From positions 288,755 to 352,754 of the IMG/VR virus record IMGVR_UViG_3300023184_000024: 64,000 nucleotides of DNA; one strand, 5' to 3'. Both the position numbers and the translations under genes were made by a program. Numbering within the stretch: position 1 is the first letter of the stretch; each line of letters opens with the position of its first letter. The notes below the pieces were generated by a model. That model worked only from the letters and a program-made list of their open reading frames with translations, ran no database searches and had not been told where the DNA came from. Shown here piece by piece: positions 5,416 through 55,349 of the stretch.

Positions 5416-5435
5416 AAATATTACTGGAGATTCCT

Positions 5436-34292: not shown

Positions 34293-35168
34293 TTGAAGCT
34301 ACAGGATATTAAATGGTTGCACATTGAACCCAGCACCAAGTGTAATGCTTGGTGCCCTGCCTGTGGCCGCAACCAAAATGGCTACGGCCTTGCACCGGAC
34401 CTGGTAGAACAAGACCTAGACATTACTTGGTTAGAAACAGTGCTAGAATCCCTGCCGGGTCGGCTTGATGGCATCCAGTTTTGCGGAGTTCTTGGAGATC
34501 CATGTGCACACACCAAGTTTTTAAACCTAGTAAAGTTGGCTAAAAAATACACCAATAAAATACAAATACACACCAACGGCGGCCTAAGATCACAACAATG
34601 GTGGTCCGAGTTGGCACACCTGTTGTCTGATGTAGATCACGATGTATGGTTCGGCATCGACGGCATCAACGAAGTGCACGAAATATACCGACAAGGAACC
34701 AGTTACGGCAAAGTAATTGGCAACGCCACTGAATTTATCAAACATGGTGGCCATGCAACCTGGCAATTTATACCGTATCAACACAACGAACATCAGATAA
34801 AGGAGTGCATGAAAACCAGCCAACAACTTGGATTTAAGAAATTTAAACTCATTCGTGGATTTAGAGATCTAAAAACTCAGGCTCGGCATTGGCAAACTGG
34901 TGACGTGTTTCAATTGGAACAAGCCAAGATGTATTCCCAGGTCAATATTATTTCTCACAAGCAGGTGGTTAAAAAAGAAAATTGCATGCATTTGTCTGGC
35001 CCCAGCGCATACATTTCCGCAGATAAAAAAATTAGCCCTTGTTGTTATTTTTATCAAACTAGATCCTATGATACAATCACTGAAATGTTGGGGAGTCTCA
35101 ACATTGAGCAGGAGTTATTGTCGCCTGTTAGGACTTGCCTAAGATCCTGTGGAACAACTGCACAGTGA
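34293..35168 (+). CDS. Radical SAM protein with C-terminal Cys cluster
   Basis: CNAWCPAC, HTNG, C..PCC..CxxxC. Confidence 0.85.
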   Translation: MKLQDIKWLHIEPSTKCNAWCPACGRNQNGYGLAPDLVEQDLDITWLETVLESLPGRLDGIQFCGVLGDPCAHTKFLNLVKLAKKYTNKIQIHTNGGLRSQQWWSELAHLLSDVDHDVWFGIDGINEVHEIYRQGTSYGKVIGNATEFIKHGGHATWQFIPYQHNEHQIKECMKTSQQLGFKKFKLIRGFRDLKTQARHWQTGDVFQLEQAKMYSQVNIISHKQVVKKENCMHLSGPSAYISADKKISPCCYFYQTRSYDTITEMLGSLNIEQELLSPVRTCLRSCGTTAQ

Positions 35169-35200: not shown

Positions 35201-36751
35201 ATGATTTTAACTATATTAATGTTTGTTGTGGCTTTGTGCTTGAGTGGTGTGGCCGCATTTTATTCTATTGTAGGGCTTACTGCTATTTTTGCCGCCGCAG
35301 TTACGCCTATTATTTTAATGGGCAGTATTTTAGAAGTGGCCAAGCTCACAGTCACAGTTTGGTTGCACGACTACTGGCATCGTATTCGCTGGTTAATGAA
35401 GGTGTATTTGTGCTCAGCAGTGGTTGTATTGATGATAATCACCAGCATGGGCATATTTGGATTTTTGTCAAAAGCGCACAGCGACCAAGGCATGGTGTCG
35501 GGTGATGTACTTGCCAAGATCAGTGTATATGATGAAAAAATTAAAATCTCAAAGGAAAATATAGATGCAAATCGCCGGGCACTTAAACAAATGGATGAAG
35601 CTGTGGACCAAGTTATGGGCCGAAGCACAGATGAAAAAGGTGCAGATAAAGCTGTACAAATCCGCAGGACCCAACAGAAGGAACGTGCTAGACTCCTTGC
35701 CGAAATTGAAGCCGAACAGAAAAAAATTACAGCACTTAATGAAGAACGAGCCCCTATTGCTGCCGAGGTACGCAAGGTTGAGGCAGAAGTCGGTCCGATA
35801 AAATACATTGCCGCATTGATTTACGGTGATGATCCAGATGCCAATTTACTAGAACGTGCAGTACGTTGGGTGATTATACTATTGGTGGTGGTGTTTGATC
35901 CTTTGGCAGTGATGATGTTGCTGGCCGCAACTGAAAGTAGAAAATGGTTGCGCGAAGATAAACTCAAGTACCCTCCTGATGACGGTCCTTTAACTGAAGA
36001 ACAAATCGAACAAATCAAGGAATCTGCCAAAGAAGACTTGCCCACTAGTGAGCTGGTAACCAAAGATGAGCTATTCCCAGTGGACCCTTCCCCACCAGGG
36101 TGGATGTACAACACCACTACAACAACATATCCTTCTACCGAAGAAGAAGTTGAAGAGTTGACACAAGAGTTTGATCGTAGCAAACACGCATACTTAGACA
36201 AGCCGTTTGTGCATTTTGAAAACCTCACGCCTATGGTGGCAAAAAAACAACCTGAAATCACTGCGGAGGAAGTCAGCATTGCTGTATCTACTCCAGAAAA
36301 GGATGAGGATGAGGATGGTGACAACGACAGTGACGTGGTAAAAATGGCCAAGACATTGTGGAAACAAGCAAACCCAACTAGCACTCTTAAAGATCAACGA
36401 AGACTATTACAATTCAAAGCAATAGATCATCTTCCTTGGTATGACTACATTGAACAAGCTGAGAATGAAGTTATTATACCGTTTGGTGACCGCTTACCCG
36501 ACACCGGTGAGAAAGCTAGCAAAAAAGGCAATCAATATATACACACGGGATATTTGCCCACTAAGTTATTCAAATACAATGGATCTAAATGGATTGAGGT
36601 TGACAAAAACCTCACAGACCGTTATGCTTACAATGATGCCTACATAGATTTTTTAATAAAAAAAGTTGGCACAGGTGAATATGACCCCGAGCTATTAAAT
36701 GATAGCGAACGAACTCAACTAGAACTTAAACTTAAAAGAGAAATTATTTAA
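35201..36751 (+). CDS. Membrane protein with coiled-coil and acidic domains
   Basis: Three N-terminal TM segments, a long heptad region, a fourth TM, and an acidic linker. Confidence 0.65.
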
Positions 36752-37950
36752 TGTCAGACACAGCACTTCAACAATACCAACATAAATGTAGTTTTTGCGG
36801 CAAAGAAAAAGACATCGTTAACAAGTTAATTGTCAGTGATGCAGTTGCTATTTGTAATGAATGCGTTTTTTTATGTCAAGACTTACTAGTAGATAAACCG
36901 TTATCAGAAGAAACAAACAGCAGTGACTCGTTGGATCCAATGAAACTCAAGGCGTATCTTGACCAGTATGTGGTTGGTCAAGAGCAGGCAAAAATAGTAT
37001 TAAGTGTGGCCATTGTTAATCATTATAAAAGAATTAATAAGTCTTCAGAAGGCCCAAATATTAGTAAAGCCAACATTTTAATGATTGGCCCCACGGGCTG
37101 TGGCAAAACATTACTGGCCAAAACTGTGGCCAAATACCTTGACGTGCCGTTTGTAATAGGTGATGCTACCAGTATTACCGAAGCTGGCTACGTAGGTGAC
37201 GATGTTGAAACACTGATTAGTCGACTGCATGCAGTGGGCGGCAACGATGTTAGCAAGACACAACGTGGCATTGTTTTCATTGATGAAATTGATAAAATTA
37301 GTCGAAAAAGCGAAAGTACCAGTATCACACGTGATGTGTCTGGCGAAGGTGTTCAGCAGGCATTGTTAAAATTAGTTGAAGGAACTGTTTGCCGTATTCC
37401 GGCCGGCGGCGGCAGGAAGCATCCTGGTGGAGACATGATTGAAATCGATACATCAGACATATTGTTTATTGCAGGCGGTGCCTTTGTTGGATTAGAAAAG
37501 ATTATTAAAAATAGAACACAGGGCACATCTATTGGATTCAACACACTTATATCAGACAACAAAGAAGTTGATATTTCACAAAGTTCACCCGATGACTTGG
37601 TCAAGTTTGGTATGATTCCTGAGTTTGTTGGGCGTTTCCCAAGCACAGTCACACTCAAAGATCTTGAACACAGTGACATGATTAGAATCTTAACTGAAAT
37701 AAAAGACAACTACATTGATCAATATCAGTGGTTGTTTTCCCAGGACTCGATTGATCTGAATTTTAATAAAGAATCCATTGAAGCACTGGTGACACGAGCA
37801 TTGGAATCAGGCACTGGAGCTCGGGCACTGCACACTGAGCTAGAACGTGCGTTGATGCCGCACATGTATAAACTAAGAGACTACCAGGCTCGGGGCATTT
37901 CCGAGGTCAACATTGTACCTGAGTTTATAAGTACTCCTACTTCACTGTAA
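36751..37950 (+). CDS. clpX: ATP-dependent Clp protease ATPase ClpX
   Basis: CSFC..CNEC Zn domain, [30 protein letters not shown] loop, TGARAL. Confidence 0.96.
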
Positions 37951-37966
37951 AGGAAGTACTGATATA

Positions 37967-38185
37967 ATGTACATCGAATTTAATATCTTAAACGCGATGG
38001 ACGATTTTGACAGCTTAGAACGTGCAGTTGCTGGCTGGGCCAACACACATAAAGTACCTTACACAACTAAAATAGCCAAAGGTTTAAAATACCGATTAGG
38101 CTTAAACTATCCTGAACACTTTACTTTATTTTTTATTACCTGGGCGTCCTGTAAATATCAAGTCAAAAACGCCAAACAGCATTGA
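37967..38185 (+). CDS. Hypothetical protein
   Basis: 72-aa ORF with AAGGA upstream. Confidence 0.55.
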   Translation: MYIEFNILNAMDDFDSLERAVAGWANTHKVPYTTKIAKGLKYRLGLNYPEHFTLFFITWASCKYQVKNAKQH

Positions 38186-38215
38186 TTTATCAAAAAGTTT
38201 TGTGTATAATAAATA
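38182..38215 (+). promoter_or_regulatory. Overlapping sigma70 and late promoters for hsp20
   Basis: TTGATT-N17-TATAAT overlapping TAAATA. Confidence 0.7.
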
Positions 38216-38217
38216 CT

Positions 38218-38267
38218 TGTGTAGCGCCGATGGTCGGGCTACACACAGTCATCTTGCTTAATAGGAG
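38218..38267 (+). ncRNA. Structured 5' UTR, ROSE-like RNA thermometer candidate
   Basis: Hairpin TGTGTAGC-G-CCGA..TCGG-GCTACACA, then CTTGCT-taat-AGGAG masking the SD. Confidence 0.65.
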
Positions 38268-38273
38268 AAAACA

Positions 38274-38729
38274 ATGACAAACACTTTAACCCTTCGTTCC
38301 TTAGACATTCCACAAATCGCTAAATTTGGTATCGGTTTCGATAACATGTTTGATGAATTACTACGTGTGAATGCTCAACAATCCAACACAAACTACCCCC
38401 CATATAACATTGTTCAAATCAATGAAAATGAATATATGATTAGCGTTGCTGTTGCAGGTTTCGGGCCTGATAATCTCACAGTTACCAAAGAGAAAAACTT
38501 CTTAGTAATTGAAGGTAATCATGCCATGAACAATGTTGAAACTGACGTGGAACCTACGTATCTACACAAAGGTATTAGTGAGCGCAATTTCCGACGTGAG
38601 TTCCGTTTAGCGGATCATGTAGAAATTGAAAACGCACATTTAGAATTGGGTATTCTTTCAATTCACCTAAAACGTGAAGTTCCTGAAGAACAAAAGCCCA
38701 AGACTATTGCAATTAGTTACACTAAGTAA
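38274..38729 (+). CDS. Small heat-shock protein Hsp20 (IbpA-like)
   Basis: IGFD, NYPPYNI, AVAGF, YLHKGIS.RNF, VPEE.KP..I.I. Confidence 0.95.
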   Translation: MTNTLTLRSLDIPQIAKFGIGFDNMFDELLRVNAQQSNTNYPPYNIVQINENEYMISVAVAGFGPDNLTVTKEKNFLVIEGNHAMNNVETDVEPTYLHKGISERNFRREFRLADHVEIENAHLELGILSIHLKREVPEEQKPKTIAISYTK

Positions 38730-38743
38730 CATTTAATGTAACA

Positions 38744-38767
38744 AGTGCGGGAGATTTTTCCCGCACT
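38744..38767 (+). terminator. Stem-loop after hsp20 (terminator or stability element)
   Basis: AGTGCGGGA..TCCCGCACT; weak U-tract. Confidence 0.5.
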
Positions 38768-38783
38768 ATTCCTAGGACTAATT

Positions 38784-39092
38784 ATGCCAACACCAGCAAC
38801 TAAAACTAAAACAAAACCCAACACAGTATTAGCAGAACCCCCGATGTTTAAAGTTATCTACATCAATGATAATCAAACATCCATGGAATTTGTTGTTAGT
38901 AGTTTAATTGACCATTTTCAATACACTCATACCACCGCTGAAAAAATCACAGTGGATATACACAGCGAAGGATCGGCTGTGGTGGCAGTTTTACCGTATG
39001 AAATTGCCGAGCAAAAAGGTATTGAAGTAACAATGAATGCAAGGAATCTTGGCTTCCCGTTGCAGATCAAACTAGAACCCGACAGTAATTAA
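38784..39092 (+). CDS. clpS: Clp protease adaptor ClpS
   Basis: PPMFKVIYINDN.TSMEFV, IH.EG.A, EIAEQK, FPLQI.LE. Confidence 0.92.
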   Translation: MPTPATKTKTKPNTVLAEPPMFKVIYINDNQTSMEFVVSSLIDHFQYTHTTAEKITVDIHSEGSAVVAVLPYEIAEQKGIEVTMNARNLGFPLQIKLEPDSN

Positions 39093-39877
39093 AATTCAAT
39101 TTCAATGCGTCGAGGATAGTAAACAGATTTCTTCCATTTTGTATCGCCCCTACCTCGACAGTTGTTGACATATCTGATGCCGTTGATTGTGGTATCTACG
39201 TCACCGTGATAATGACCAAAGCACCAGGTCTTTACTTTTTTTTCTAAATCGTTGTCAAGTACATATTGCATGAGACTATTGCCTATGCAGTTAAATCGGT
39301 AAGTTCCTGCCAGGTCAATGTCGTGCTGGATAAACACAGGACTTGGCACAGTGTGCGTCATTATTACAATGTTTTTTACATCTTGATGTGTTTGTAACTT
39401 TCCAATAGATTCTCGAAGATACACAGCATCGTTGGTGGCCAACTCGGTGATTGACTCCGCCACGTGGTCTGAACAAAGTGTGTGATCTTTGTACCAAAGC
39501 TGGGAATCTTCAATGGACATAGCAGGATCAAAATCCCAGGTGAACCACCCATTTGTGCCCAATAATGCCACACCGTTGATGATAATCACATTGTCCTGAA
39601 GATAAACCACGTTGGGTATGGTTGACAACTGATGCTTTAAACTTGTATAATTATCATGTATATCATTGAGATAATCCCTGTGTTCGTCGTTGCCGTCAAT
39701 GTAAAAAACTGCTTGGTAATGTTGGCCAAGATGCGTCAGTGTTTCAATCAACACATCAGTATCTTTTGCAACATCTCCAGCAACAAGGCACACAGGACTG
39801 GTGGCTTGGCCAGCCCAATCAAACGAATCCCACGTTTCGATGTGTAGGTCTGAAATCAAATCAAATGCTATTTTCAT
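39089..39877 (-). CDS. Calcineurin-like metallophosphoesterase
   Basis: SDLH, AGD, GNDE, THTVP, FGHYH. Confidence 0.85.
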   Translation of the reverse strand: MKIAFDLISDLHIETWDSFDWAGQATSPVCLVAGDVAKDTDVLIETLTHLGQHYQAVFYIDGNDEHRDYLNDIHDNYTSLKHQLSTIPNVVYLQDNVIIINGVALLGTNGWFTWDFDPAMSIEDSQLWYKDHTLCSDHVAESITELATNDAVYLRESIGKLQTHQDVKNIVIMTHTVPSPVFIQHDIDLAGTYRFNCIGNSLMQYVLDNDLEKKVKTWCFGHYHGDVDTTINGIRYVNNCRGRGDTKWKKSVYYPRRIEIEF

Positions 39878-39903: not shown

Positions 39904-40257
39904 ATGAATATTATTTTGGGGAAAGAAAACATACTTGGACTTGATTCAAAGTATCTAGTACTAGAGTTAGACACCATGAGATTTGGCAACAGTGCAGATC
40001 CTGTCACTGCATACTGTCTAATAGAAAACCTTCCAATCAACGAAATGCTGACATTAGATCAGTACAGTGATCTGCACGAAAATTTAATACGCAATTATAG
40101 ATTAAAAAATTGGAACTATTGCATCAATGCCATTGAACACCTCAAAGGTAAATGGCACGGGGAAGTGGATTCTTTTTATCAAGACTTGTTGCAACGGATT
40201 ACTGCGATTCAAGATCAAGAACTTGACGACGCCTGGGACGGATATTTAATCCGCTGA
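39904..40257 (+). CDS. Hypothetical protein resembling the C-terminal part of class III nucleotidyl cyclases
   Basis: LELDTMRF..PVTAY, YR.KNW and WDG patterns. Confidence 0.45.
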   Translation: MNIILGKENILGLDSKYLVLELDTMRFGNSADPVTAYCLIENLPINEMLTLDQYSDLHENLIRNYRLKNWNYCINAIEHLKGKWHGEVDSFYQDLLQRITAIQDQELDDAWDGYLIR

Positions 40258-41565
40258 CCTAGCCCGGTTGATGTCTATCAACAGTTGAATAAGATCTTGT
40301 TTTGGCTTGCTAGGCCAATCTCCGGTCAAGTATGTGATATTGTCCGGGTTATGGCTCATTAATTTTCTAAACTCAGTCCAGTCGTGTCCAGTTTTGTATT
40401 GACTGCATGACTGTTTTGCAAGTGCAACATTGTCAGTTAGTTCGTTTATTATCAACTCTGCAAATTCTTTACTGAAAAATCTTGATTGATTGTGTCTTGT
40501 TATTGCAGACATGCATTGGCCTAGTTGCATTTTGTCTCGGTCAGACATTGCACTGAGTTCTTTCATTAACTGTAGAATTTTTTCCATCCTAACAACCGGG
40601 TTTGGTTCTTGGTCATAGCTTTCGTCAAAGAAATCACCAAATGTCTGGAATCCATAGCTTTTTAAATATTCTAAACTGCCAGCTGGACCCACCAATATAA
40701 ACGGTTTGTTGCAGGCAATTGGGCGCAGTGTTTTTTCAGTTAAATGTATTCGTTGATCGTCGAACAAGGTTTCAAGTATGACTTCAAACCAACATTGTTT
40801 GTAATCTTTGACACTGTAATCTGCACTTGCATACGACGGGCTTTGATTTTTTGCAATCTGACAGAGATCGTTGTTGGGCTTAAACTCAGGATTGGTAAAC
40901 ACATGGTCAAGGTAGTGTAGGTCCTGGTCCAGTGGTGCAAAGCTTACATTACACGAGTCTGTCAGGTTGTTGTCAATGAGCAAGTCTAGAAATTTCAATC
41001 TATATTCTCTAGTACCAGACCAAGCACGGTTGTAGATGTTAAAATCTTTTTGATAGTTTTCAGCTAGACGTAATAATTGGGCATCATGTTGGGCGTATCT
41101 AAACCAGTCTCTGGCAATGAATGCATGGCTCCACCAATAAACACCTTTGTACCCGTGTTGCTCGTACAATGCTATTTGGTCAGAGTTTTTTTCACTGTGA
41201 CACAGCAGAGTCTGATCATGTATTGTCTGCCCGGCAAACACAAATTTTAAATTTTGCTTGGTAATAAAACTGGTCAATTCTGGAGTCAATGACATATAAG
41301 TTGTAGGCCGATGATATTGATACCATTTTTCAACTGTTTCTTGGGGCAAATTTTCATATAAGTCAAAATTTAACGGCTCTTGATCATACATAATCATCGG
41401 CACAGTTCGTGCTAGATCGCAGGCCAACAGTTTTACAGACTCTTGTTCTAAGCGTTGTAGGTCGGGCACTTTTTTACTGCCATGAGGAAAAAAACAATAA
41501 ATTATAATGTCTTGATCAATTAAATCACCAATGTAGTGATACAACTTATCTAAAGGAATAAACAT
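40246..41565 (-). CDS. GT10-like ('TEK' motif) putative glycosyltransferase
   Basis: ILET..LTEKTLRPI..KPFILVG..GFQTF..DESYD. Confidence 0.55.
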   Translation of the reverse strand: MFIPLDKLYHYIGDLIDQDIIIYCFFPHGSKKVPDLQRLEQESVKLLACDLARTVPMIMYDQEPLNFDLYENLPQETVEKWYQYHRPTTYMSLTPELTSFITKQNLKFVFAGQTIHDQTLLCHSEKNSDQIALYEQHGYKGVYWWSHAFIARDWFRYAQHDAQLLRLAENYQKDFNIYNRAWSGTREYRLKFLDLLIDNNLTDSCNVSFAPLDQDLHYLDHVFTNPEFKPNNDLCQIAKNQSPSYASADYSVKDYKQCWFEVILETLFDDQRIHLTEKTLRPIACNKPFILVGPAGSLEYLKSYGFQTFGDFFDESYDQEPNPVVRMEKILQLMKELSAMSDRDKMQLGQCMSAITRHNQSRFFSKEFAELIINELTDNVALAKQSCSQYKTGHDWTEFRKLMSHNPDNITYLTGDWPSKPKQDLIQLLIDINRARSAD

Positions 41566-42802
41566 GTCGAGTAAAATAGGTTTTATAGGTTTAGGGAAAC
41601 TAGGCCTAGAGTGTGCTGAAGTTTTTGCAGAACACTATGAAGTTTCAGGTTATGATATTTACCCACGCACCAGCGACTCAGTAAAAGTTTGCAACATTGA
41701 GGACGTGGTAGAAAACAGCGATTGGATTTTTATTGCTGTGCCAACACCCCACAGTGAGGGGTACGATGGATCAGTTCCAAGTTCACACATGAAGCCCAAA
41801 GACTTTGGTCATGATGCTGTGATTGATGCAATCAACAAGGTCAATACATTTGCCACTAGTTCTAAAAAAATTGTGCTTATTTCCACAGTTCTTCCTGGCA
41901 CCACACGCAAACATTTTTACTCGTTGTTGGACAAAAAACATCAGTTTTTGTATAACCCGTATTTGATTGCCATGGGGTCAGTGAAATGGGACATGGTCAA
42001 CCCAGAAATGGTCATGATTGGCACCGAAGATGGTGATCAAACAACTTTGGCCAGCGAGCTCATTGAAATTTATAAACCATTGATGAAAAACGATCCAAGG
42101 TATGTTGTGGGCACATGGGACGAATGTGAAGCAATTAAAATTTTCTACAACACCTTTATCAGTGCCAAGGTTGGTCTTGCCAACATGATTCAAGACTTTG
42201 CACTCAAAATTGGCAACATCAATGTTGATGTGGTCACCAATGCATTGGCACAAAGCACCATGCGTATCATGGGCCCAAAGTACATGACCGCTGGCATGGG
42301 CGATGCTGGAGCCTGTCATCCTCGAGATAACATTGCTCTTCGTTGGTTAGCTGAAGAATACAACATTGGTTACGACTTGTTTGATACCATCATGCATGCT
42401 CGTGAAATCCAAGCAAAGAATCTAGCACAATTTTTGGTAAACCAAGCCAGCAACGGGTTGCCAATTGCCATTCACGGCAAAGCATACAAGCCTGACGTTG
42501 AATACTGCATTGGATCTTACTCAACGCTGGTTGGGCACTATGTCAAAGAACTCGGGCACACTGTGGTTTACGTAGATCCATTGGCCGACAATTCAACTGA
42601 TGTTGTTGCTGAGTTAACTGGACCTCATGTGGTGTTGTGGGCACACAATCGCAAAATCACCTATGAGTACACTGGAGATCAACTTGATACACAGCCATAT
42701 TGTGTTATTCCTCAAGGATCGATAATTGTTGACCCATGGCGCAAACTTGGGGACTCTGAGGAACACACAATTATCCACTATGGCAACACACGTGGTCAGT
42801 AA
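41564..42802 (+). CDS. UDP-glucose/GDP-mannose dehydrogenase family protein
   Basis: GLGKLG, AVPTP, STVLPGT, IKIFYNTF, catalytic-region GACHPRD. Confidence 0.9.
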   Translation: MSSKIGFIGLGKLGLECAEVFAEHYEVSGYDIYPRTSDSVKVCNIEDVVENSDWIFIAVPTPHSEGYDGSVPSSHMKPKDFGHDAVIDAINKVNTFATSSKKIVLISTVLPGTTRKHFYSLLDKKHQFLYNPYLIAMGSVKWDMVNPEMVMIGTEDGDQTTLASELIEIYKPLMKNDPRYVVGTWDECEAIKIFYNTFISAKVGLANMIQDFALKIGNINVDVVTNALAQSTMRIMGPKYMTAGMGDAGACHPRDNIALRWLAEEYNIGYDLFDTIMHAREIQAKNLAQFLVNQASNGLPIAIHGKAYKPDVEYCIGSYSTLVGHYVKELGHTVVYVDPLADNSTDVVAELTGPHVVLWAHNRKITYEYTGDQLDTQPYCVIPQGSIIVDPWRKLGDSEEHTIIHYGNTRGQ

Positions 42803-43298
42803 GTACAATCTTCCTGTATTCTGGAACAATGAATTTAAAACTCTTGACTACATTCAAGAGCCATTCAATGATCCTACCAGTGTGGCACAATGGTTGGCAC
42901 AAGGTTACCACACCAAGATCTGTGGCGACCTGTGTGACATGCGCCATCGGTTGCCTGCGTGGAGTCAACGATTCATTGACATCTATACTGAGATGGGATG
43001 GAAAGACATTGGACTTGCATTTTATCGCATGCCCACTGGCACAGTAATACCAGTGCACGGCGACCTGTACAAACGCTATGTTGAATTGTTCAACTTGCAG
43101 GGCCATGAACAAAGCATACGTCGTGCATTGGTGTTGTTAGAAGATTGGAAACCAGGGCATTACCTTGAAGTTGTTGGCCATCCTTATGTGAACTGGAAAG
43201 CTGGGACCACAGTGGAGTGGAGTTATGATGCTCCGCACTCAGCGGCAAATATTGGTCTTGAACATCGCTATACATTACAAATCACAGGACATTTATGA
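42780..43298 (+). CDS. Cupin/2OG-Fe(II) oxygenase-like protein
   Basis: PVHGD..LEDWKPGH..PHSAANIG..RYTLQITG. Confidence 0.6.
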   Translation: MATHVVSKYNLPVFWNNEFKTLDYIQEPFNDPTSVAQWLAQGYHTKICGDLCDMRHRLPAWSQRFIDIYTEMGWKDIGLAFYRMPTGTVIPVHGDLYKRYVELFNLQGHEQSIRRALVLLEDWKPGHYLEVVGHPYVNWKAGTTVEWSYDAPHSAANIGLEHRYTLQITGHL

Positions 43299-44209
43299 TA
43301 TCATCGTGGAATGAGTGGGACCCGTTAAAAAAGATTGTGGTAGGATCGGCCACCAATGCCAACTGGCCTGTGAATGATCCGGTGTTTGCCCGCGAAGGTG
43401 AAAAAACCAGCTGGAAAGAAACACCTGTGCCACGTGGCCCAGTTCCGCAGAAGATAATCGACGAAACCAACGAAGATCTAGACAAGTTGGCAACAATGTT
43501 GATGAGTCTGGGCGTTGAAGTTGTGCGCCCTGAGTCATTGGATTTTCAAACACACGATGGCATGTACAATTATTGCCCACGTGATAGACTTTTAGTTGTG
43601 GGCAACCGAGTAATTGACACAGCCATGATGTATCCATGTAGAGACATGGAATTACAATGCTATCATGGCATATTAAAAGATGCAGAAATGATATCAATGC
43701 CCAGGGATCAAGGGTTGGTATTAGATGCAGCCAATGTGTGCAGACTGGGCAACAAAATGTTGTTTTTAGAGTCAGCATCGGGCAATCGTGCTGCCTACGA
43801 ATGGTTGTGCGGCCAGTTCCCAGACATTGAAATTGAGTTATGTAACTTCTATGCAGGGGTGCACATTGATTCAACCATTGTGCCGTTGCGTAAAGGTCTG
43901 GTCATGTTGAATTCTAGTCGTGTAAATATGGACACAGTGCCCAAAGTCTTTGATGGCTGGCACAAAATTTGGATAAATGATGTAGTAGCACAAGACTTTT
44001 ACCAATACCCCTACGCATCAAAATGGATAGCTATGAATATGTTAGTGGTAGATCCGCACACAGTGATTTGTAATCAAAGTCAACGTGATTTAATCAAAAC
44101 ACTCAAAAGCTATAAGTTTGAAGTAATACCAATGGAACTGCGTCATAGCCGTACATTGGGTGGTGGATTCCATTGTGCAACATTGGACCTATGGAGAAAA
44201 CATGATTGA
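43295..44209 (+). CDS. Amidinotransferase (glycine/inosamine-phosphate amidinotransferase family)
   Basis: SWNEWDPL, CPRD, DAAN, HID, GGGFHCATLD. Confidence 0.9.
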   Translation: MISSWNEWDPLKKIVVGSATNANWPVNDPVFAREGEKTSWKETPVPRGPVPQKIIDETNEDLDKLATMLMSLGVEVVRPESLDFQTHDGMYNYCPRDRLLVVGNRVIDTAMMYPCRDMELQCYHGILKDAEMISMPRDQGLVLDAANVCRLGNKMLFLESASGNRAAYEWLCGQFPDIEIELCNFYAGVHIDSTIVPLRKGLVMLNSSRVNMDTVPKVFDGWHKIWINDVVAQDFYQYPYASKWIAMNMLVVDPHTVICNQSQRDLIKTLKSYKFEVIPMELRHSRTLGGGFHCATLDLWRKHD

Positions 44210-45260
44210 TAATAATTCGTTAAACTCAACACTGACACTGGCAATTGATAATGCAATACAAGATCTAGTTAATAAAACCATCGACTCGTTGGTGCTAGAC
44301 CCTGCTTGGGTTGCAAAAATAGAATCAATTGTCAATCAAAGTTATGCACAAAGATTTGCTCGACACATCAGCACAGTTGACATTGAGTCAATGGTGGTCA
44401 AGTATCTTGAAGAAGGTGTGGATAGATGGCAAGAAAAATTAAAAAATAATTTTAAAACGAATGGAATCACTGACGATGCAACCTCTTGTCAACTCACAGT
44501 GATGGACGGAGTTGTTGTAGTTGAAAACAATGCAGTTGCAAGAAATCTCACAGTGATTGAAGATTCGGACGTACAAGGAACATTGACCGTTAAAAACCTT
44601 GTGGTAAAAGGATCAATCAACACTGATAATCATTCTTGGAAAGAGTTATCGACTTACATTGTGGACATAACTTTAGAAAAAGTCAATAAACAATGGCGTG
44701 ACGATTTGGCCAAAGAAGTTGTGGCCCTGGCCAAAACACAGGGTATCAGCTTCAAAGAAATTCTAATCAATGACAAACCATTGGTTGTTGACTCTGCACT
44801 AAATTCGTTTATCACACAAACCAGCATCGAACAAACTGGAGTTCTTAAAGACTTAACAGTGTCCGGAGAAGCAGTGTTCAACGATAATACATTGTCAGTG
44901 TTGAATCGTCGAGTGGGAGTTAACACACGTACTCCTGAAATGGCACTGGGACTATGGGACGAAGAAGTGTCGGTGTTGATTGGAAAGCTGTCACAAAATA
45001 ATGCATTTGTGGGCACCGGGCGAGGACAGTCGTTGTCATTGGGCACAAATAGACAACCACAGCTGGAGATCAACACTGACGGACTAGTCACTGTTAAAAA
45101 ATTACAGGTAGATAAATTTCAAATTGGACATGCTACCACTGTACCTGGCCACAGCGGAACAAAAGGCGACTTATTGATCAACAGCGACTTCAAGCAAGAC
45201 CAACCATTTGCTTGGATATGTTTAGGTGGCTTCCGTTGGCAACCACTGAAGGGTGCATGA
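44202..45260 (+). CDS. Hypothetical, possibly fibre-like structural protein
   Basis: Beta-repeat segments (LTVSG, VGVNTRTP) and C-terminal WICLGG..W. Confidence 0.45.
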   Translation: MIDNNSLNSTLTLAIDNAIQDLVNKTIDSLVLDPAWVAKIESIVNQSYAQRFARHISTVDIESMVVKYLEEGVDRWQEKLKNNFKTNGITDDATSCQLTVMDGVVVVENNAVARNLTVIEDSDVQGTLTVKNLVVKGSINTDNHSWKELSTYIVDITLEKVNKQWRDDLAKEVVALAKTQGISFKEILINDKPLVVDSALNSFITQTSIEQTGVLKDLTVSGEAVFNDNTLSVLNRRVGVNTRTPEMALGLWDEEVSVLIGKLSQNNAFVGTGRGQSLSLGTNRQPQLEINTDGLVTVKKLQVDKFQIGHATTVPGHSGTKGDLLINSDFKQDQPFAWICLGGFRWQPLKGA

Positions 45261-45814
45261 TGAAAATTAGCTGGGTAGTTGCTGATGGTTATACGTTTGA
45301 TCCTACTATACATCTTAACCAAGTTAAAGATATCGGGCCGGTCTGGGGATCATGGCGCACATGGAGATCTTGTGGCACTGACAATGTTATCAGTCATGAA
45401 TTTAAAAAATCACAAGAATTATTACAACGGGCATTTCAAGCAGTTTGTAATTTTTATATCCCAAAGCATGATTATCAAGGACACGGCCGTCCGATGGGGG
45501 TTAAACTGTATGATGGTGAATACAACTCTCAGTTAGATCGTGTAGAAGAAATCATAGCAATGCATCTGGCTGCGCAAAGTTCGGACATTGTATTAATGCT
45601 GGGATTTAATTTGGTTATGCCCGAAAACATCACAGACAAATTAGAACAACATAAAATCAAGAATTATCATGGTCTGGTTCGGAGTGCAATTGCTGCCAAC
45701 GAGAATGTACAATGGGTGGCAGTGGATCATGCAAGCACACCAGATCAAGCATATTCAACATTGCCCAATTTCTCTTGCGATGTAATGGATAATGTGTTAC
45801 AATTACTAACTTAA
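45257..45814 (+). CDS. Hypothetical protein (possible degenerate Maf/DUF115-like fold)
   Basis: AMHLAA..IVLMLGFN pattern. Confidence 0.4.
   Translation: MMKISWVVADGYTFDPTIHLNQVKDIGPVWGSWRTWRSCGTDNVISHEFKKSQELLQRAFQAVCNFYIPKHDYQGHGRPMGVKLYDGEYNSQLDRVEEIIAMHLAAQSSDIVLMLGFNLVMPENITDKLEQHKIKNYHGLVRSAIAANENVQWVAVDHASTPDQAYSTLPNFSCDVMDNVLQLLT
45775..45803 (+). promoter_or_regulatory. sigma70-type promoter for uvsE
   Basis: TTGCGA-N17-TACAAT with TG extension. Confidence 0.5.
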
Positions 45815-47175: not shown

Positions 47176-47241
47176 ATACCCACTATTTCTTTTCTCCAAA
47201 ACAAGTAAATATTAAAATAACAACTATAATAGGTGAGCATA

Positions 47242-48645
47242 ATGATAAAAAGAATTGCCCTGAGCTTGATCAGCCTTGCGCTGATAGCGGTAGCCACTGC
47301 ACAAACAACAACCGGAACGTCGGGTACCTCTGGCGGCACAACCACTGGAACTACTACAGTTATTAACCAAGGTAGCTATGATTCCAAATCATTGGTAGAT
47401 ACCAATAGTACTAGTAACAGCGTGAGCACAATTAACACAAACAACGTTAACAGTGGCACTATTACCAACAACAATAACACCAGTTTAACTGGTGGAACAA
47501 CAAATACCAACGTTAACACAAATACCAACAATGGTACAATGACCAACAACAATAACAACAACAACGTTATGAGTGGCAGTGTTACCTATACAAACAACAA
47601 CAACAATGTAAACAGCGGTACTCAAACGTTCAACAACAATAACGTCAACACTGGTACAATGACCAATAATAACAACAATGTCAATACCAGCACCAGTTCG
47701 AGTACTAATGTTAACACCAATAACAATGTCAACAGCGGTACACAAACGTTCAACAATAATAATGCTAGTACATCATCCAGCACAGCAGTTAATACTAATA
47801 ACAATATTAACAGCGGCACAATGACTTACAACAACAACAATGTCAGCTCTAGTACAAGTACCAATACAAATAACAATAACAATGTCAGCACAAGTACCAA
47901 CACAAATTATCAGTATGGTACAATGACCAATAATAACAACAACGTGAATACCAGTACCAGTGCCAACACCAATAACAATGTTAACACAGGTGACATGACC
48001 AACCGTAATATCAACAATACCACTGCTACAACCAGCAACACCAACACCAATGTTAACAGTGGCACAATGACCAACATTAATCAGAATACCAACAATGGTA
48101 CAATGACCAACAACAACAATAACACTAGTACAAGCACCAATGTCAATCAAAATGCCAACGTTAATCAAAACATCAACAGTGGTGAAATGACTAACAAGAA
48201 TATCAACGAAACAACTATCACGCAAAAAGTTATTCAACCTCCACCAACTGCTGTTGCTCCTGCAATGATGAGTGGTGGCAATGCCGATTTATGTAGTACT
48301 GGTACCAGTGGTAGTGTTCAGACTCAAATATTTGGAGTAGGTGCCGGCAGTACCAGTCGTGATATGAATTGTGAACGATTAAAGTTAAGTAAAACTTTGT
48401 ATGATATGGGTATGAAGGTTGCCGCTGTGGCCACAATGTGTCAAGACCGTAGAGTATTTGATGCCATGTTGGCCGCTGGCACACCCTGCCCGTTTGAAGG
48501 CAAGATTGGTGAACAAGCCAAGGCTGCATGGGAATCAAATCCAGAAAAGTTGCCAAAACTTGAAGAGGAAAAACTAGATGACACTTACAAGAAAGTTGGC
48601 TTCGGCGCTTTGCTTGGCGTTCTCATTCATAACGCTTTCAAGTAA
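47242..48645 (+). CDS. Secreted Asn/Thr-repeat protein with Cys-containing C-terminal domain
   Basis: Signal peptide, roughly 260 aa of N/T/S repeats, then a 4-Cys domain (DLC..NCERLK..MCQD..TPCP). Confidence 0.75.
   Translation: MIKRIALSLISLALIAVATAQTTTGTSGTSGGTTTGTTTVINQGSYDSKSLVDTNSTSNSVSTINTNNVNSGTITNNNNTSLTGGTTNTNVNTNTNNGTMTNNNNNNNVMSGSVTYTNNNNNVNSGTQTFNNNNVNTGTMTNNNNNVNTSTSSSTNVNTNNNVNSGTQTFNNNNASTSSSTAVNTNNNINSGTMTYNNNNVSSSTSTNTNNNNNVSTSTNTNYQYGTMTNNNNNVNTSTSANTNNNVNTGDMTNRNINNTTATTSNTNTNVNSGTMTNINQNTNNGTMTNNNNNTSTSTNVNQNANVNQNINSGEMTNKNINETTITQKVIQPPPTAVAPAMMSGGNADLCSTGTSGSVQTQIFGVGAGSTSRDMNCERLKLSKTLYDMGMKVAAVATMCQDRRVFDAMLAAGTPCPFEGKIGEQAKAAWESNPEKLPKLEEEKLDDTYKKVGFGALLGVLIHNAFK
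47400..48200 (+). repeat. Coding low-complexity repeat (NNNN-VNSG-TMT / TQTF units)
   Basis: Recurring AAC/AAT runs and GGTACAATGACCAA copies. Confidence 0.9.
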
Positions 48646-51088
48646 TGCTCAAGTAGATAGTACCACCGGTAATTTAATAAATTACGGTACATCTGCCACG
48701 GATACAACCAGTACTTGGAACAACGGCGTCTACGTTAACCAGCTATGCTTTGCTGCCGGCCAACCAGGAAACTGTGGACCAAACCCTAGTGTTCGTCAAG
48801 GTGGCTATATCAACTTCAGTTACGGCACAGCTGATCTTAATCAAATTGTCAACATAAACCGAGCCCTGGCTGCTGGCGGCACAGGAGTACAACTCAGTGG
48901 ATTTAACTTTGGATTTACAGCAAAGAATGGTAATGGCTGGGACGATGCTAGACAGGATTATCTAGCCGCTTATGTTAAACTATATGGCAGTGGCGGCAAT
49001 TTAGTTGCCAATTATGATTACTCAGCACAGACTAACAGAAAATACAATTGGACTAACTTTAGCTTTAACGAAACATTTGCCAACCCGGCGGCCGCTTCAC
49101 AGTATAGTAACGCACAAGTGGGCTTTGTAGGCAGAGACAATAACTTCTGGGCAGGAAATTATGGTCCTGAAATTTTTAATGTTAGTTTTAGTTTGAAATA
49201 TCGTGTTGATCCTTGTGCTCAGAATCCTGCCTACAGTCCTAGTTGTTCTGGATTTAACACAGTTACAACCAGTAACAATTTGTTTAATTCTAGTGTATGG
49301 GGAAGTTCCGTAAATCAAGCAATTGCCATTAATACCGCATTAAAGAACGGCGGCATTGGTGCCACAGTGCACGGCTTTAACTATGGATTTGATTATACAG
49401 TAGGTGAAAGTTGGTTCGGTTGTACAGCTACCAATCAAGATGGATCTTGTAGTTGGTATATGAATATTCCTGCTCAAGTAAGTGCCACAGCACGACTTAC
49501 CAACAGTAGCAATCAAACAATATATTCAAAAGGTCATACATTAACCGGTGACGGCACCAGCGGATCGGTGAGTGGGCAGTATTTGTTGACAACCAGTTTG
49601 AATCAAACATCCTTGGGCAATGTCAGCTTAACGGGTAGTACTTCGGGTACCGGATCATCCATTGGTAATTTTTCAGCAAGTTTGATTTATACTGCTGACC
49701 CTTGTGTGTCTAACCCATTGTACAATGCATCTTGTTCAGGATATGCCGTTGCTTTTGCTAAAAATATGTTATTGGGCTCGACAGTTGCCAGTGCGTCTGG
49801 TCCTATAGTGGCTTCGAGTGGTTCAATAAGTTTGTCAACAACATCAACAGGTTCGTTAGAACCAGCACCAACATCGGGACCAACAGAACAAAGCGGACCA
49901 ACACAACCCCAACAAACATCCGGACCTGCCCCAAATCCCACACAAGATTCGGGTCAAACTACAGCACAATCGGATCCTGCACAACCAAGTCCAACACAAG
50001 CAGGTCCTGCTCCCACAAGTCCGCAACCTGCCGGCGGGCCTCCGCAGACTGCAACAGCAAGTGCGCCAAATTCATCTGGACCTAGTGGAGGAGGCTCAGC
50101 AGGTCCAAGTAAATTAGCAATGAGTGTGGTTAAAACAGCACAGGCAAATGACAAAGCTACGCAAAATGCCGCAGTACAGAATGCCGCTAAAACTCTAGAA
50201 GGTTCAATACAAAGTTCGCAAGCCGCTAGTAATGCCGCAATTAGCATGAATCAAGATATGAGTGCTAACAGTGCTGTTGCAGCCGCAAACTTTGCTGGCC
50301 AAACAACACAGGCTAGTCAGCAAACTGCTATACAAGCAACTCAACAAACATCACAGTCTAATGTGCAACAGACGCAACAAAGTTCTAGGGTAACACAGCA
50401 AGTACAGCAACAACACGATGTACAAGTATCAATGATTCAATCAACTAACGGAGTTTCACAAATTCAACAGTTTATATATACTCCTCCGGTACAGCAACAA
50501 ACTGATACACTGTCTGCACAGATTAGTATGTTAAAACCACCCGCTCCACTGGTCATTGAAATGCAACAACAAACTAGTGGCGGCACTGGTTTAACTGTTA
50601 GTCGCAACTTGTTTGCTTACAATCCATTAATGTCATCAAATACTGCCAATATGTCAGCACTATTGCCTGCTCCTCAACCTGTGTATCAACCTAGATTAGA
50701 TACTAGACAAAGTGAAGTGGAAACGCCACAAATGCCGATTGCCAGTTTTGGCGGTGCAGGCCGTGCCGGTAATCCGTTGTCAGAAATACTGATGCAACAA
50801 AAATTTGAAATCATGCAGGATAATATAGCGCAACCGGGCAGTTTGGTGAATAGAAATGCGCTACCAAATGAGCTGGCAGGTGGCATTGATATTGCTAGTA
50901 TAGCCAGTGTGCCCCAGGGATTTAATGCTTATTCATTTGTGTTAAAAGATGCGTCGTTCTATGAGCCAAAAGAAGTTTATAAAAATCAACGCACAGTTGA
51001 CAATGAACGAGTGTTGCGAGGATTGACCAGAGGTAGTGACAGCTTACATCAACGCATGGTTGATCAACAGTATAAGATAGGAAATTAA
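48578..51088 (+). CDS. Large secreted protein: two tandem beta domains plus Pro/Gln-rich regions
   Basis: Signal peptide; duplicated Q.x.IN.AL..GG.G..GFN.GF and DPC..NP.Y..SCSG motifs. Confidence 0.7.
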   Translation: MTLTRKLASALCLAFSFITLSSNAQVDSTTGNLINYGTSATDTTSTWNNGVYVNQLCFAAGQPGNCGPNPSVRQGGYINFSYGTADLNQIVNINRALAAGGTGVQLSGFNFGFTAKNGNGWDDARQDYLAAYVKLYGSGGNLVANYDYSAQTNRKYNWTNFSFNETFANPAAASQYSNAQVGFVGRDNNFWAGNYGPEIFNVSFSLKYRVDPCAQNPAYSPSCSGFNTVTTSNNLFNSSVWGSSVNQAIAINTALKNGGIGATVHGFNYGFDYTVGESWFGCTATNQDGSCSWYMNIPAQVSATARLTNSSNQTIYSKGHTLTGDGTSGSVSGQYLLTTSLNQTSLGNVSLTGSTSGTGSSIGNFSASLIYTADPCVSNPLYNASCSGYAVAFAKNMLLGSTVASASGPIVASSGSISLSTTSTGSLEPAPTSGPTEQSGPTQPQQTSGPAPNPTQDSGQTTAQSDPAQPSPTQAGPAPTSPQPAGGPPQTATASAPNSSGPSGGGSAGPSKLAMSVVKTAQANDKATQNAAVQNAAKTLEGSIQSSQAASNAAISMNQDMSANSAVAAANFAGQTTQASQQTAIQATQQTSQSNVQQTQQSSRVTQQVQQQHDVQVSMIQSTNGVSQIQQFIYTPPVQQQTDTLSAQISMLKPPAPLVIEMQQQTSGGTGLTVSRNLFAYNPLMSSNTANMSALLPAPQPVYQPRLDTRQSEVETPQMPIASFGGAGRAGNPLSEILMQQKFEIMQDNIAQPGSLVNRNALPNELAGGIDIASIASVPQGFNAYSFVLKDASFYEPKEVYKNQRTVDNERVLRGLTRGSDSLHQRMVDQQYKIGN

Positions 51089-54460: not shown

Positions 54461-54469
54461 GATGTGTCC

Positions 54470-55288: not shown

Positions 55289-55349
55289 TTGTATGTGTCC
55301 ATAATGTAGGTATTTAATACCCAATGTTATTTATGTTTTTAGATGTTAC

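Follow-up and report, generated by a model that had tools for sequence, protein, structure and literature searches.

A 353-kb freshwater phage carries a tightly packed and widely conserved gene set, consisting of an unusual sugar dehydrogenase homologue, a predicted iron/2-oxoglutarate (2OG) oxygenase, a streptomycin-type amidinotransferase and a glycosyltransferase-like protein. Our best reading, held with moderate confidence, is that it is a sugar-tailoring module of a virus-encoded glycosylation system that installs guanidino groups by a streptidine-like logic, yielding a nitrogen-rich sugar for a virus-built glycan, a chemistry not yet described for any virus. The module lies at 40246-45814 of the window, i.e. 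the whole 64,000-nucleotide stretch analyzed (positions 288,755 to 352,754 of IMG/VR record IMGVR_UViG_3300023184_000024). A sequence-only reading of this window had described an operon of overlapping UDP-sugar dehydrogenase, cupin/2OG-like and amidinotransferase genes, divergent from a GT10-like gene and followed by a fibre-like and a Maf-like gene, and this gene arrangement is confirmed by our analysis.

The glycosyltransferase (GT)-like gene (40246-41565, minus strand) and the UGDH-like gene (41564-42802, plus strand) are divergent, and their start codons overlap in the CATG at 41563-41566, which leaves no intergenic promoter space. Both N-termini are conserved from residue 1, back-to-back starts also occur in relatives, and identical contig pieces from an independent freshwater study span both junctions without differences. 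The genes that follow are translationally coupled. The oxygenase most likely starts at ATG 42780 rather than at TTG 42726, since it is 172 aa long in most relatives; it overlaps the UGDH stop by 23 nt and ends at 43298. The amidinotransferase (43295-44209, plus strand) starts in an ATGA overlap, the next ORF (ATG 44202) overlaps it by 8 nt, and the last ORF (ATG 45257/45260) overlaps in ATGATGA.

The amidinotransferase (304 aa) is closest to StrB1. A phmmer search against the PDB returned StrB1 (1bwd) at E 1.8e-61 over residues 2-301, and HsvA, AGAT and SxtG at about 1e-28 to 1e-31. The catalytic Cys-His-Asp triad and the Asp residues that hold the guanidino group, i.e. C294 (GGGFHC), H190 and D192 (HIDST), D144 (DAAN) and D97 (CPRD), align with the identical StrB1 blocks and are invariant in 27 relatives. 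The protein is about 30 residues shorter than StrB1 between residues 128 and 138 and belongs to a monophyletic phage clade on a long stem.

The dehydrogenase (412 aa) is a homologue of NDP-hexose 6-dehydrogenases that belongs to a distinct "NPY" subfamily. The Pfam N-terminal NAD-binding domain (PF03721, 55.7 bits, cut-off 27) and central domain (PF00984, 54.5 bits, cut-off 25.4) are above threshold and phrog_9148 is matched at 1.6e-92, whereas the C-terminal UDP-binding domain (PF03720, 18 bits against 30) and the NCBIfam whole-protein model NDP-sugDHase (TIGR03026, 138.7 bits against 189.8) fall below their cut-offs. Cys251, Lys192, Asn196 and Asp255 align with human Cys276, Lys220, Asn224 and Asp280 and are invariant. 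However, Tyr133 occupies the column of human Glu161, the Brønsted base for thioester hydrolysis (PMC3265891), as read from the position at which the E161Q mutant structure 3khu shows Q and the wild type shows E, and Met137 aligns with Glu165. The change from Glu161 to Tyr is invariant in the subfamily. The NPYL and GACHPRD motifs, singled out as atypical in the sequence-only reading, are indeed present and invariant in relatives, and the NPY motif is invariant in the phage clade, Bdellovibrionota and cyanophage Bellamy.

The small oxygenase (42780-43298, plus strand) is recognized by predicted fold and motif only, as no Pfam, PHROG or NCBIfam model is matched. Its AF2 model (pLDDT 90.6) gives 178 PDB matches at E <= 0.001 in Foldseek, led by the P. 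putida prolyl-4-hydroxylase 4j25 (E 2.7e-6) and followed by fungal and many other 2OG oxygenases, consistent with a double-stranded beta-helix. The putative iron triad and the basic residue for the 2OG C5 carboxylate (H93-x-D95...H153...R163-Y-T) are invariant in 27 sequences and are retained in a paralogue at 205 kb of genome G000.

The GT-like protein (439 aa) belongs to an unannotated family. Its AF2 model (mean pLDDT 92) adopts a predicted GT-B fold, with VIA-align Z scores of 11.8 to T4 beta-glucosyltransferase (BGT), 10.0-10.3 to POGLUT1/2, 10.0 to H. pylori alpha1,3-FucT (5zoi), 9.8 to T4 AGT, 8.9 to FUT9 and 8.5 to FUT11. The family has 4677 cluster representatives in the large protein database, of which the 120 examined carry no Pfam domain. 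The GT10 identity suggested by the sequence-only reading was not supported by profiles: no Pfam, PHROG or NCBIfam model is matched, and Glyco_transf_10 gave no hit to the protein at E <= 0.01 or to the whole genome at E <= 1, although the control genomes also lacked this family. The protein has an invariant E265-T266...T276-E277-K278 block, and its F-E-V-I-L-E-T-x9-T-E-K sequence partially resembles the alpha1,3-FucT motif FxL/VxFENS/TxxxxYxTEK (PMC8433944), matching in the first half and in TEK, but with a spacing two residues longer and ET in place of ENS/T. The assignment as a glycosyltransferase rests on fold and a motif and not on a CAZy or Pfam family. Two paralogues lie elsewhere in the window, at 55654-56688 (minus strand, 344 aa, blastp 2.5e-13, sharing the ET...TEK...GFxTF...SYD block) and at 62111-63091 (plus strand, 326 aa, 1.4e-15, with the same C-terminal block), neither with a Pfam hit; a more distant one at 10104-11144 (plus strand, 346 aa, 8.7e-4) shares the ET...TEK...GF..F...SY block in the alignment.

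The two downstream ORFs are variable accessories, found in 23 and 17 of 80 loci respectively, and not part of the core. The first (44202-45260, plus strand, 352 aa) had no HMM hit. Its ESM Atlas neighbours are viral hypotheticals, with a feature score of 0.91 to a PTL_trimer cluster and structure rows reaching only TM <= 0.43, including DUF2793 and endosialidase-chaperone clusters, on a poor Atlas model (pTM 0.24); a tail-fibre identity is thus weakly supported. In relatives of the type of locus L032 it is followed by a radical SAM gene. For the second (45257-45814, plus strand, 184-185 aa), the proposed Maf-like identity is not supported: no Pfam, PHROG or NCBIfam model was matched alone or across 11 homologues, PF02545 and PF01973, the families for Maf as septum-formation nucleotide pyrophosphatase or Maf/MptE-like flagellin glycosyltransferase, gave no hit at E <= 5, and only an ESM lead to MptE-like/WaaZ clusters (0.85-0.88, below the 0.9 lead threshold) was obtained.

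The core genes are linked in relatives. Absence of linkage in relatives had been set beforehand as a condition that would count against the proposed pathway, but dehydrogenase, oxygenase and amidinotransferase are adjacent in 80/80 related IMG/VR loci, with the 4-nt oxygenase/amidinotransferase overlap conserved, and the GT is present in 74/80. The four genes are nevertheless not strictly interdependent, since the GT is absent from 6 of 80 and UGDH is missing or truncated in two relatives (L090 and L048). Amidinotransferases are 67-84% and dehydrogenases 57-82% identical, but GTs only 25-48%, which fits a conserved donor sugar and a variable acceptor.

The association recurs independently. In a second viral clade, typified by cyanophage S-SCSM2R, the oxygenase-amidinotransferase pair again overlaps, at 30-35% identity (30%, E 8e-26, for the oxygenase gp308, directly upstream of the amidinotransferase), amid five annotated glycosyltransferases, a short DegT-like gene and a radical SAM gene. 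In 80 loci of that clade, short DegT occurs in 74, the oxygenase in 71, a carbamoyltransferase in 30, radical SAM in 24 and an NPY-type UGDH directly after the amidinotransferase in 11, always among GT genes. Pseudobdellovibrionaceae chromosomes carry the GT-like gene (minus strand), divergent from amidinotransferase, UGDH-like (45-51% identity), epimerase/dehydratase, short DegT, two GT2 and radical SAM genes. The NPY-type UGDH of Bellamy (57% identical) sits between GT, carbamoyltransferase, NadE-like and methyltransferase genes. The glycosyltransferase-rich contexts of the amidinotransferase in the second viral clade and in Bdellovibrionota support a sugar pathway over glycine or creatine-type chemistry. 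However, most bacterial homologues of the amidinotransferase (36-42% identity) sit beside NRPS-like, SbnA/SbnB-like and PPTase genes, i.e. amino-acid natural-product clusters, and the family does not by itself imply a sugar substrate.

The phage itself is a complete 352,754-bp jumbo myovirus with three amidinotransferase-centred loci and at least 10 GT paralogues. The two further pentein loci lie next to GT paralogues, and the genome also encodes DegT, epimerase/dehydratase, carbamoyltransferase, a NadE-like protein and at least 8 radical SAM proteins. No module protein or GT paralogue has a hydrophobic membrane-spanning segment, and a search for a priming phosphoglycosyl transferase found none, in keeping with cytoplasmic action.

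Based on the above data, the sequence-only interpretation, an unusual guanidino/uronic sugar decorating virion proteins, DNA or the host surface, is partly supported. The enzyme identifications and their linkage were right, while the product and its destination remain inference; the reading missed that this is one of three paralogous amidinotransferase loci in a phage with at least 10 GT paralogues, that the usual partners elsewhere are a short DegT aminotransferase and radical SAM enzymes, and that the last two genes are accessories. What our analysis establishes is that four soluble proteins are encoded back-to-back, an NAD-dependent NDP-hexose 6-dehydrogenase homologue, a 2OG/Fe(II) oxygenase, a StrB1-type amidinotransferase with a complete catalytic apparatus and a GT-B fold glycosyltransferase-like protein, and that the first three are linked across the relatives examined, with the exceptions given above. 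The activities, amidino transfer from L-arginine included, as well as substrates, product and acceptor, are inferred. In the proposed pathway, the dehydrogenase would oxidize C6 of a nucleotide sugar, on which an amino group would be made by the DegT-type aminotransferases of the phage after oxidation by the 2OG oxygenase and/or radical SAM enzymes. The amidinotransferase would then convert this amine to a guanidino group with L-arginine as donor, following the oxidize, transaminate, amidinate order used for streptidine. Since the module itself has no aminotransferase, the amine acceptor must be supplied from elsewhere or is not a sugar. Because Tyr replaces the hydrolytic Glu, the last step of the dehydrogenase may differ from ordinary uronic-acid formation. 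Lastly, the GT-B enzyme and its at least 9 paralogues would build the modified sugars into a glycan in the cytoplasm, most probably on a virion surface protein such as the fibre-like protein, inferred to be co-transcribed; this virion targeting rests on analogy and on an accessory gene of uncertain identity.

An alternative, which we consider unlikely, is DNA hypermodification protecting the genome from restriction, in which the oxygenase would hydroxylate a base, the GT-B enzyme would glycosylate it as T4 BGT/AGT or the base-J system do, and the dehydrogenase and amidinotransferase would tailor the sugar. In its favor, T4 BGT is the best structural match of the GT, the module abuts UvdE and a metallophosphoesterase, the second paralogous locus is inserted between Mre11-like and Rad50-like genes, and radical SAM and PLP enzymes also occur in thymidine hypermodification pathways. 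However, searches of the complete genome found no ThyA-type hydroxymethylase and no TET/JBP oxygenase, the oxygenase resembles prolyl hydroxylases and not TET, ten or more GT paralogues fit an oligosaccharide better than a base adduct, the homologous Bdellovibrionota and cyanophage clusters contain GT2 or GT25 polysaccharide-type transferases, and the Z-score margin over protein and glycan GT-B enzymes is only about 1.5.

Remodelling of host nucleotide-sugar pools, LPS or capsule, for example to block superinfection or change receptor display, is likewise unlikely. UGDH, DegT, epimerase and carbamoyltransferase genes are typical of O-antigen and capsule loci, the Bdellovibrionota homologues are chromosomal and adjacent to large GT2 proteins, and the S-SCSM2R island contains a GT25 (LPS-type) gene. 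Against this stand the lack of a priming transferase and of membrane-spanning segments in the module proteins and GT paralogues noted above; moreover, the phage looks lytic, judged from its terminal repeats and T4-like nature, and surface conversion gives a lytic phage little time to pay off.

A diffusible small molecule, such as an aminoglycoside- or aminocyclitol-like guanidino compound or an amidinated polyamine or amino acid, is possible but similarly improbable. The S-SCSM2R authors called these "antibiotic synthesis genes" (PMC12801897), StrB1 is the nearest solved relative, and an oxidant, a DegT/StrS-family aminotransferase, an amidinotransferase and a carbamoyltransferase mirror streptidine and bluensidine chemistry. 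HsvA, which prefers polyamines, is also a hit, and the bacterial NRPS-type contexts point in the same direction. However, no kinase, cyclitol synthase, exporter or resistance gene was seen beside the module, no NRPS-like genes were noticed in the phage loci inspected, and the constant companions in viruses are multiple glycosyltransferases, which implies polymer or conjugate building.

Least likely is direct protein modification without a tailored sugar, in which the oxygenase would hydroxylate and the pentein enzyme amidinate residues of a structural protein (for example Lys to homoarginine), the GT adding an ordinary sugar to the hydroxylated residue. The best structural match of the oxygenase is a protein prolyl hydroxylase, the next-best matches of the GT are the protein O-glucosyltransferases POGLUT1/2, SPASM-type radical SAM enzymes are often peptide maturases, a fibre-like gene is embedded among the enzymes, and an amidinotransferase and a prolyl hydroxylase were found in the S-SCSM2R virion proteome. 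Nevertheless, no amidinotransferase is known to act on proteins, and this reading gives no role to the strictly linked dehydrogenase, the DegT genes or the epimerases.

Compared with StrB1 and the streptidine branch of streptomycin biosynthesis, the catalytic residues are conserved and companion enzymes in related loci reproduce the order of oxidation, DegT/StrS-type transamination and amidinotransfer, but the phage enzyme is about 40 residues shorter, with the deletion between residues 128 and 138, is encoded among glycosyltransferases, and has a 2OG oxygenase or radical SAM enzyme rather than an NAD dehydrogenase as oxidant partner. With human UGDH and bacterial Ugd/TuaD/WbpA, the dehydrogenase shares the three-domain architecture, GxGxxG and the catalytic Cys, Lys, Asn and Asp; it differs in the replacement of Glu161 and Glu165 and in a divergent C-terminal domain with invariant DPWR and HYGNTR motifs, the NPY subfamily being shared at 48-57% identity with Bdellovibrionota and Bellamy. 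The P. aeruginosa B-band O-antigen pathway (WbpA/B/E/D/I plus WbpG), which makes an acetamidino mannuronic acid, also combines a UGDH-family dehydrogenase, a DegT aminotransferase and formation of an amidine-type nitrogen group on a uronic sugar, and the phage likewise has a NadE-like gene. There, however, the amidine is made on an N-acetyl group by an ATP-dependent amidotransferase, whereas here a pentein-fold arginine-dependent amidinotransferase would make a guanidine, and no acetyltransferase was seen. As in chlorovirus capsid glycans, mimivirus fibril sugars and glycosylated mycobacteriophage virions, a large virus carries its own nucleotide-sugar enzymes (dehydratase/epimerase, DegT aminotransferase) and many soluble glycosyltransferases, but none of those systems is known to contain an amidinotransferase, a Glu161-less UGDH or expanded SPASM radical SAM sets. 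The GT-like protein shares the GT-B fold with T4 BGT (GT63) and alpha1,3-fucosyltransferases (GT10), without a profile match to GT10 or any Pfam GT family and in a phage lacking a hydroxymethylated-base pathway. Finally, the oxygenase shares with prolyl-4-hydroxylases such as P. putida PPHD the DSBH fold, the HxD...H triad and an Arg ten residues after the distal His, but it is only 172 aa long and is always coupled to an amidinotransferase or short DegT gene, which suggests a small-molecule or sugar substrate.

The DNA examined is the last 64 kb (positions 288755-352754) of a complete 352,754-bp virus record with direct terminal repeats, hereafter G000. Its large terminase is T4-like and closest, at about 53% identity, to those of the jumbo myoviruses PA5oct, Atu_ph07 and Phosso. 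The region occurs in lake and freshwater metagenomes, and an independent study holds identical contig pieces that span the gene junctions, whereas no RNA run was found to contain it, so that the operon structure discussed here is inferred from gene layout. ORF listing and direct reading of the sequence confirm the layout described in the sequence-only reading, with a minus-strand gene at 40246-41565 and a chain of overlapping plus-strand genes at 41564-42802, 42780-43298, 43295-44209, 44202-45260 and 45257/45260-45814. The two divergent start codons share the tetranucleotide CATG (41563-41566), and both N-termini are conserved from residue 1 in relatives, in which back-to-back starts recur. 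There is therefore no intergenic promoter space, and each promoter must lie inside the other gene unless the mRNAs are leaderless. A perfect sigma-70 promoter (TTGACA-N18-TATAAT; 39622-39651, + strand) lies inside the minus-strand phosphoesterase gene, points toward the module and could drive the plus-strand operon through the antisense of the glycosyltransferase (GT) gene. However, it is not conserved in 62 relatives (best 8-10 of 12 positions) and is not treated here as part of the module.

The whole G000 genome carries 9 such perfect sites against 0.37 expected. This 25-fold excess of sigma-70 consensus promoters, together with a terminase closest to those of Pseudomonas and Agrobacterium jumbo phages, conflicts with an assignment of the host to Bacteroidota, which had been suggested by two MAG contigs binned as Haliscomenobacter sp. 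and Bacteroidetes UBA11400 (L089 and L090). Both contigs are syntenic phage fragments, and the assignment was not retained. The surroundings of the module carry other genes. ClpX (E 1.5e-152), an IbpA-like small heat-shock protein and a ClpS adaptor lie in a row at 36751-39092, a proteostasis set conserved next to the module in most relatives. Upstream of ClpX, a further radical SAM protein sits next to an ATP-dependent DNA ligase (34293-35168 and 32901-34274, both + strand). Two large proteins of 470 and 836 aa, at 47233-51088 (+), have hydrophobic, signal-peptide-like N-termini and no family match, and an Asp/Glu racemase, a sodium:dicarboxylate symporter and a family-3 solute-binding protein lie together at 51914-55324 (-), an amino-acid uptake and racemisation set that is unusual for a phage.

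The 412-aa dehydrogenase (41564-42802) matches the UDP-glucose/GDP-mannose dehydrogenase N-terminal and central domains and phrog_9148, but misses both the NCBIfam subfamily cut-off and the Pfam C-domain cut-off. Its alignment to human UGDH shows Cys251, Lys192, Asn196 and Asp255 in place. Tyr133 stands where Glu161, the Bronsted base for thioester hydrolysis (PMC3265891), is, a column in which the E161Q crystal-structure sequence shows Q, and Met137 stands where Glu165 is. The motif YNPY[LF]IAMG is invariant across the phage clade, two Bdellovibrionota homologues and Synechococcus phage Bellamy gp227, at 48-78% identity, so that the NPYL motif singled out as atypical from the sequence alone marks a real subfamily. 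The 172-aa oxygenase (42780-43298) has no HMM hit, but its predicted structure (pLDDT 90.6) is a double-stranded beta-helix most like prolyl-4-hydroxylase and other 2OG oxygenases, and it carries the invariant H93-x-D95...H153...R163-Y-T. The 304-aa amidinotransferase (43295-44209) matches StrB1 at E 1.8e-61, far better than AGAT, HsvA or SxtG. All its catalytic blocks are invariant, and it lacks about 30 residues present in StrB1 between residues 128 and 138.

The divergent 439-aa protein (40246-41565) has no HMM hit either. Its structure, predicted at pLDDT 92, adopts a GT-B fold, for which the best matches are T4 beta-glucosyltransferase (Z 11.8), POGLUT1/2 (10.0-10.3), H. pylori alpha1,3-fucosyltransferase (10.0) and T4 alpha-glucosyltransferase (9.8). 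These matches were obtained with VIA-align only, since a sequence-profile search of the GT alignment against PDB gave a single spurious hit and Foldseek against PDB was weak (E about 0.01). Its invariant F-x-V-x-L-E-T-x9-T-E-K block resembles the alpha1,3-FucT motif but does not equal it. The earlier label 'GT10-like' is thus a fair description of resemblance, not of membership, and the GT10 family is absent from the complete genome, in which GT2 gives only two sub-threshold matches. The family of the 439-aa protein has 4,677 cluster representatives in the large protein database, of which the best 120 listed carry no Pfam domain. As for the two downstream ORFs, only weak language-model links to tail-fibre trimerisation domains bear on the 352-aa protein (44202-45260), which had been called fibre-like, and the 184-aa protein (45257/45260-45814) has no support as the Maf-like protein it had been proposed to be, a search of 11 homologues against Pfam having returned no relevant hit.

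In the best 80 of 201 related IMG/VR stretches, dehydrogenase, oxygenase and amidinotransferase are adjacent in 80/80, the GT gene is present in 74/80, the fibre-like gene in 23 and the last ORF in 17, and the 4-nt overlap of oxygenase and amidinotransferase is conserved. Two relatives depart from this picture at the dehydrogenase, L090 lacking the gene and L048 having a truncated one. Protein identity falls from the amidinotransferase (67-84%) and the dehydrogenase (57-82%) to the GT (25-48%), a pattern that fits a conserved donor sugar and a fast-changing acceptor. Because these relatives are all one syntenic lineage, more distant comparisons were sought. Cyanophage S-SCSM2R (locus L081) has an amidinotransferase, 34.5% identical, which is again overlapped by a homologous small oxygenase (30% identity, E 8e-26). 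The pair sits in an island of five annotated glycosyltransferases, a short DegT/AHBA-synthase-like gene and a radical SAM gene. In 80 loci of that clade, which counts 330 stretches in IMG/VR, a short DegT occurs in 74, the small oxygenase in 71, a carbamoyltransferase in 30, a radical SAM gene in 24, and an NPY-type dehydrogenase directly after the amidinotransferase in 11, and these are almost always embedded among GT genes. The cyanophage homologues were published as 'antibiotic synthesis genes' without tests (PMC12801897), and a diffusible guanidino metabolite remains possible. The same paper reports a second 'glycine amidinotransferase' and a prolyl hydroxylase-like oxygenase in the virion proteome, which hints that such enzyme pairs may be packaged or very abundant.

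Among 80 bacterial loci, most amidinotransferase homologues (36-42% identity) sit beside NRPS-like, SbnA/SbnB-like and PPTase genes. Three Pseudobdellovibrionaceae loci differ, in that they carry the GT-like protein divergently, then the amidinotransferase, an NPY-type dehydrogenase (45-51% identical to that of the phage), an epimerase/dehydratase, a short DegT, GT2 genes and radical SAM genes. A 161-aa ORF in the Bdellovibrio cluster is not an oxygenase homologue (hhalign probability 0.2%). In the phage's own genome, a locus at about 148-168 kb holds an epimerase/dehydratase, DegT, two GT paralogues, a second pentein enzyme, a carbamoyltransferase and six or more radical SAM genes. A second locus at about 204-209 kb holds a short DegT, an oxygenase paralogue, a GT paralogue, radical SAM and a third pentein enzyme, and this five-gene module is inserted between Mre11-like and Rad50/SbcC-like genes (G000 203691-210810, equivalent to positions 3691-10810 of stretch L169). 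The DegT gene lies at G000 150688-151710 and the short DegT gene at G000 204701-205372. The genome also carries a NadE-like gene 49% identical to the one next to Bellamy's dehydrogenase, and at least 10 paralogues of the GT-B protein in all, three more of them inside the window. In the expanded set of radical SAM paralogues (G000 159.5-168.7 kb, with further examples at 8934-10226 of locus L032 and 11286-12587 of locus L100), the SPASM-like Cys-rich domain lies N-terminal to the radical SAM core, the reverse of the usual order. PDB sequence searches with two of the radical SAM paralogues found no BtrN-like or other informative relative.

The amidinotransferase, the NPY dehydrogenase, the small oxygenase, the short DegT, SPASM-type radical SAM enzymes and this GT-B family form a recurring toolkit, which in every viral setting and one bacterial setting sits with glycosyltransferases. 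The simplest chemistry that uses all parts is the order known from streptidine biosynthesis, in which a carbinol is oxidised, transaminated by a DegT/StrS-family enzyme, and the resulting amine amidinated from arginine; here it would be applied to a nucleotide sugar that is also oxidised at C6. The gene layout, the family resemblances and the linkage of the genes rest on the analysis itself, whereas this sequence of reactions, including the activity of each enzyme in it, is inferred, as are the product and its target. The loss of Glu161 suggests that the thioester of the dehydrogenase is resolved differently, by a slower reaction, another base or aminolysis. However, the pairing of Bellamy's enzyme with a NadE-like amidating enzyme would fit an ordinary carboxylate product.

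No module protein or GT paralogue has a hydrophobic segment, and the phage lacks a priming phosphoglycosyl transferase, a profile search of the complete genome for Bac_transf families having returned none. Assembly is therefore probably cytoplasmic, on a soluble acceptor, although remodelling of the host envelope also remains possible. By analogy with chloroviruses, mimivirus and glycosylated mycobacteriophages, and given the embedded, weakly supported fibre-like gene, a virion protein is the most likely acceptor. DNA hypermodification is suggested by the structural matches to the T4 beta- and alpha-glucosyltransferases and by DNA-repair neighbours, but it is weakened by the absence of ThyA-like and TET/JBP enzymes in a complete genome and by the number of GT paralogues. 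Pure protein modification does not explain the strictly linked nucleotide-sugar enzymes. The observation made from the sequence alone is thus confirmed. Its interpretation is supported in part, in that the type of pathway is supported while the product and target proposed for it remain inference.

Phage amidinotransferases have been annotated before, in Campylobacter phages and S-SCSM2R. We found no description of this module, of the Glu161-less dehydrogenase subfamily or of the GT-B family, and literature searches for amidinotransferase with UDP-glucose dehydrogenase and glycosyltransferase, and for 'guanidino sugar', returned no paper linking these enzymes. The module occurs in hundreds of environmental viral contigs and raises three concrete biochemical questions, namely the acceptor of a compact StrB1-like amidinotransferase, what a naturally Glu161-less UGDH releases, and what a 172-aa 2OG oxygenase does to a sugar. 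It also defines a predicted GT-B family of over 4,600 database clusters for which we met no annotation. If the product decorates virions, it would be a new type of cationic surface glycan, relevant to adsorption, host range and resistance to degradation; if it is a small molecule or a DNA adduct, the finding would be even less expected. The sugar-pathway reading would also correct the published reading of the cyanophage homologues as 'antibiotic synthesis genes'.

A bolder and tentative reading, which we consider less likely than not but a real chance, is that aquatic phages (this jumbo-phage clade and the cyanophage-type clade) and some Bdellovibrionota share a previously unrecognised cassette that installs guanidino groups on sugars. 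It would consist of an oxidant (2OG oxygenase and/or SPASM radical SAM), a miniature DegT aminotransferase and a StrB1-like amidinotransferase, teamed with a UGDH subfamily that has lost the hydrolytic Glu and may resolve its acyl-enzyme non-hydrolytically. The product would be a cationic guanidino (uronic or uronamide) glycan on virions, a sugar chemistry unknown in any virus and barely known in glycans at all. The module is best compared with virus-encoded glycosylation and sugar tailoring. Virus-encoded glycosylation is known from giant eukaryotic viruses and a few phages, but not with arginine-derived guanidino chemistry.
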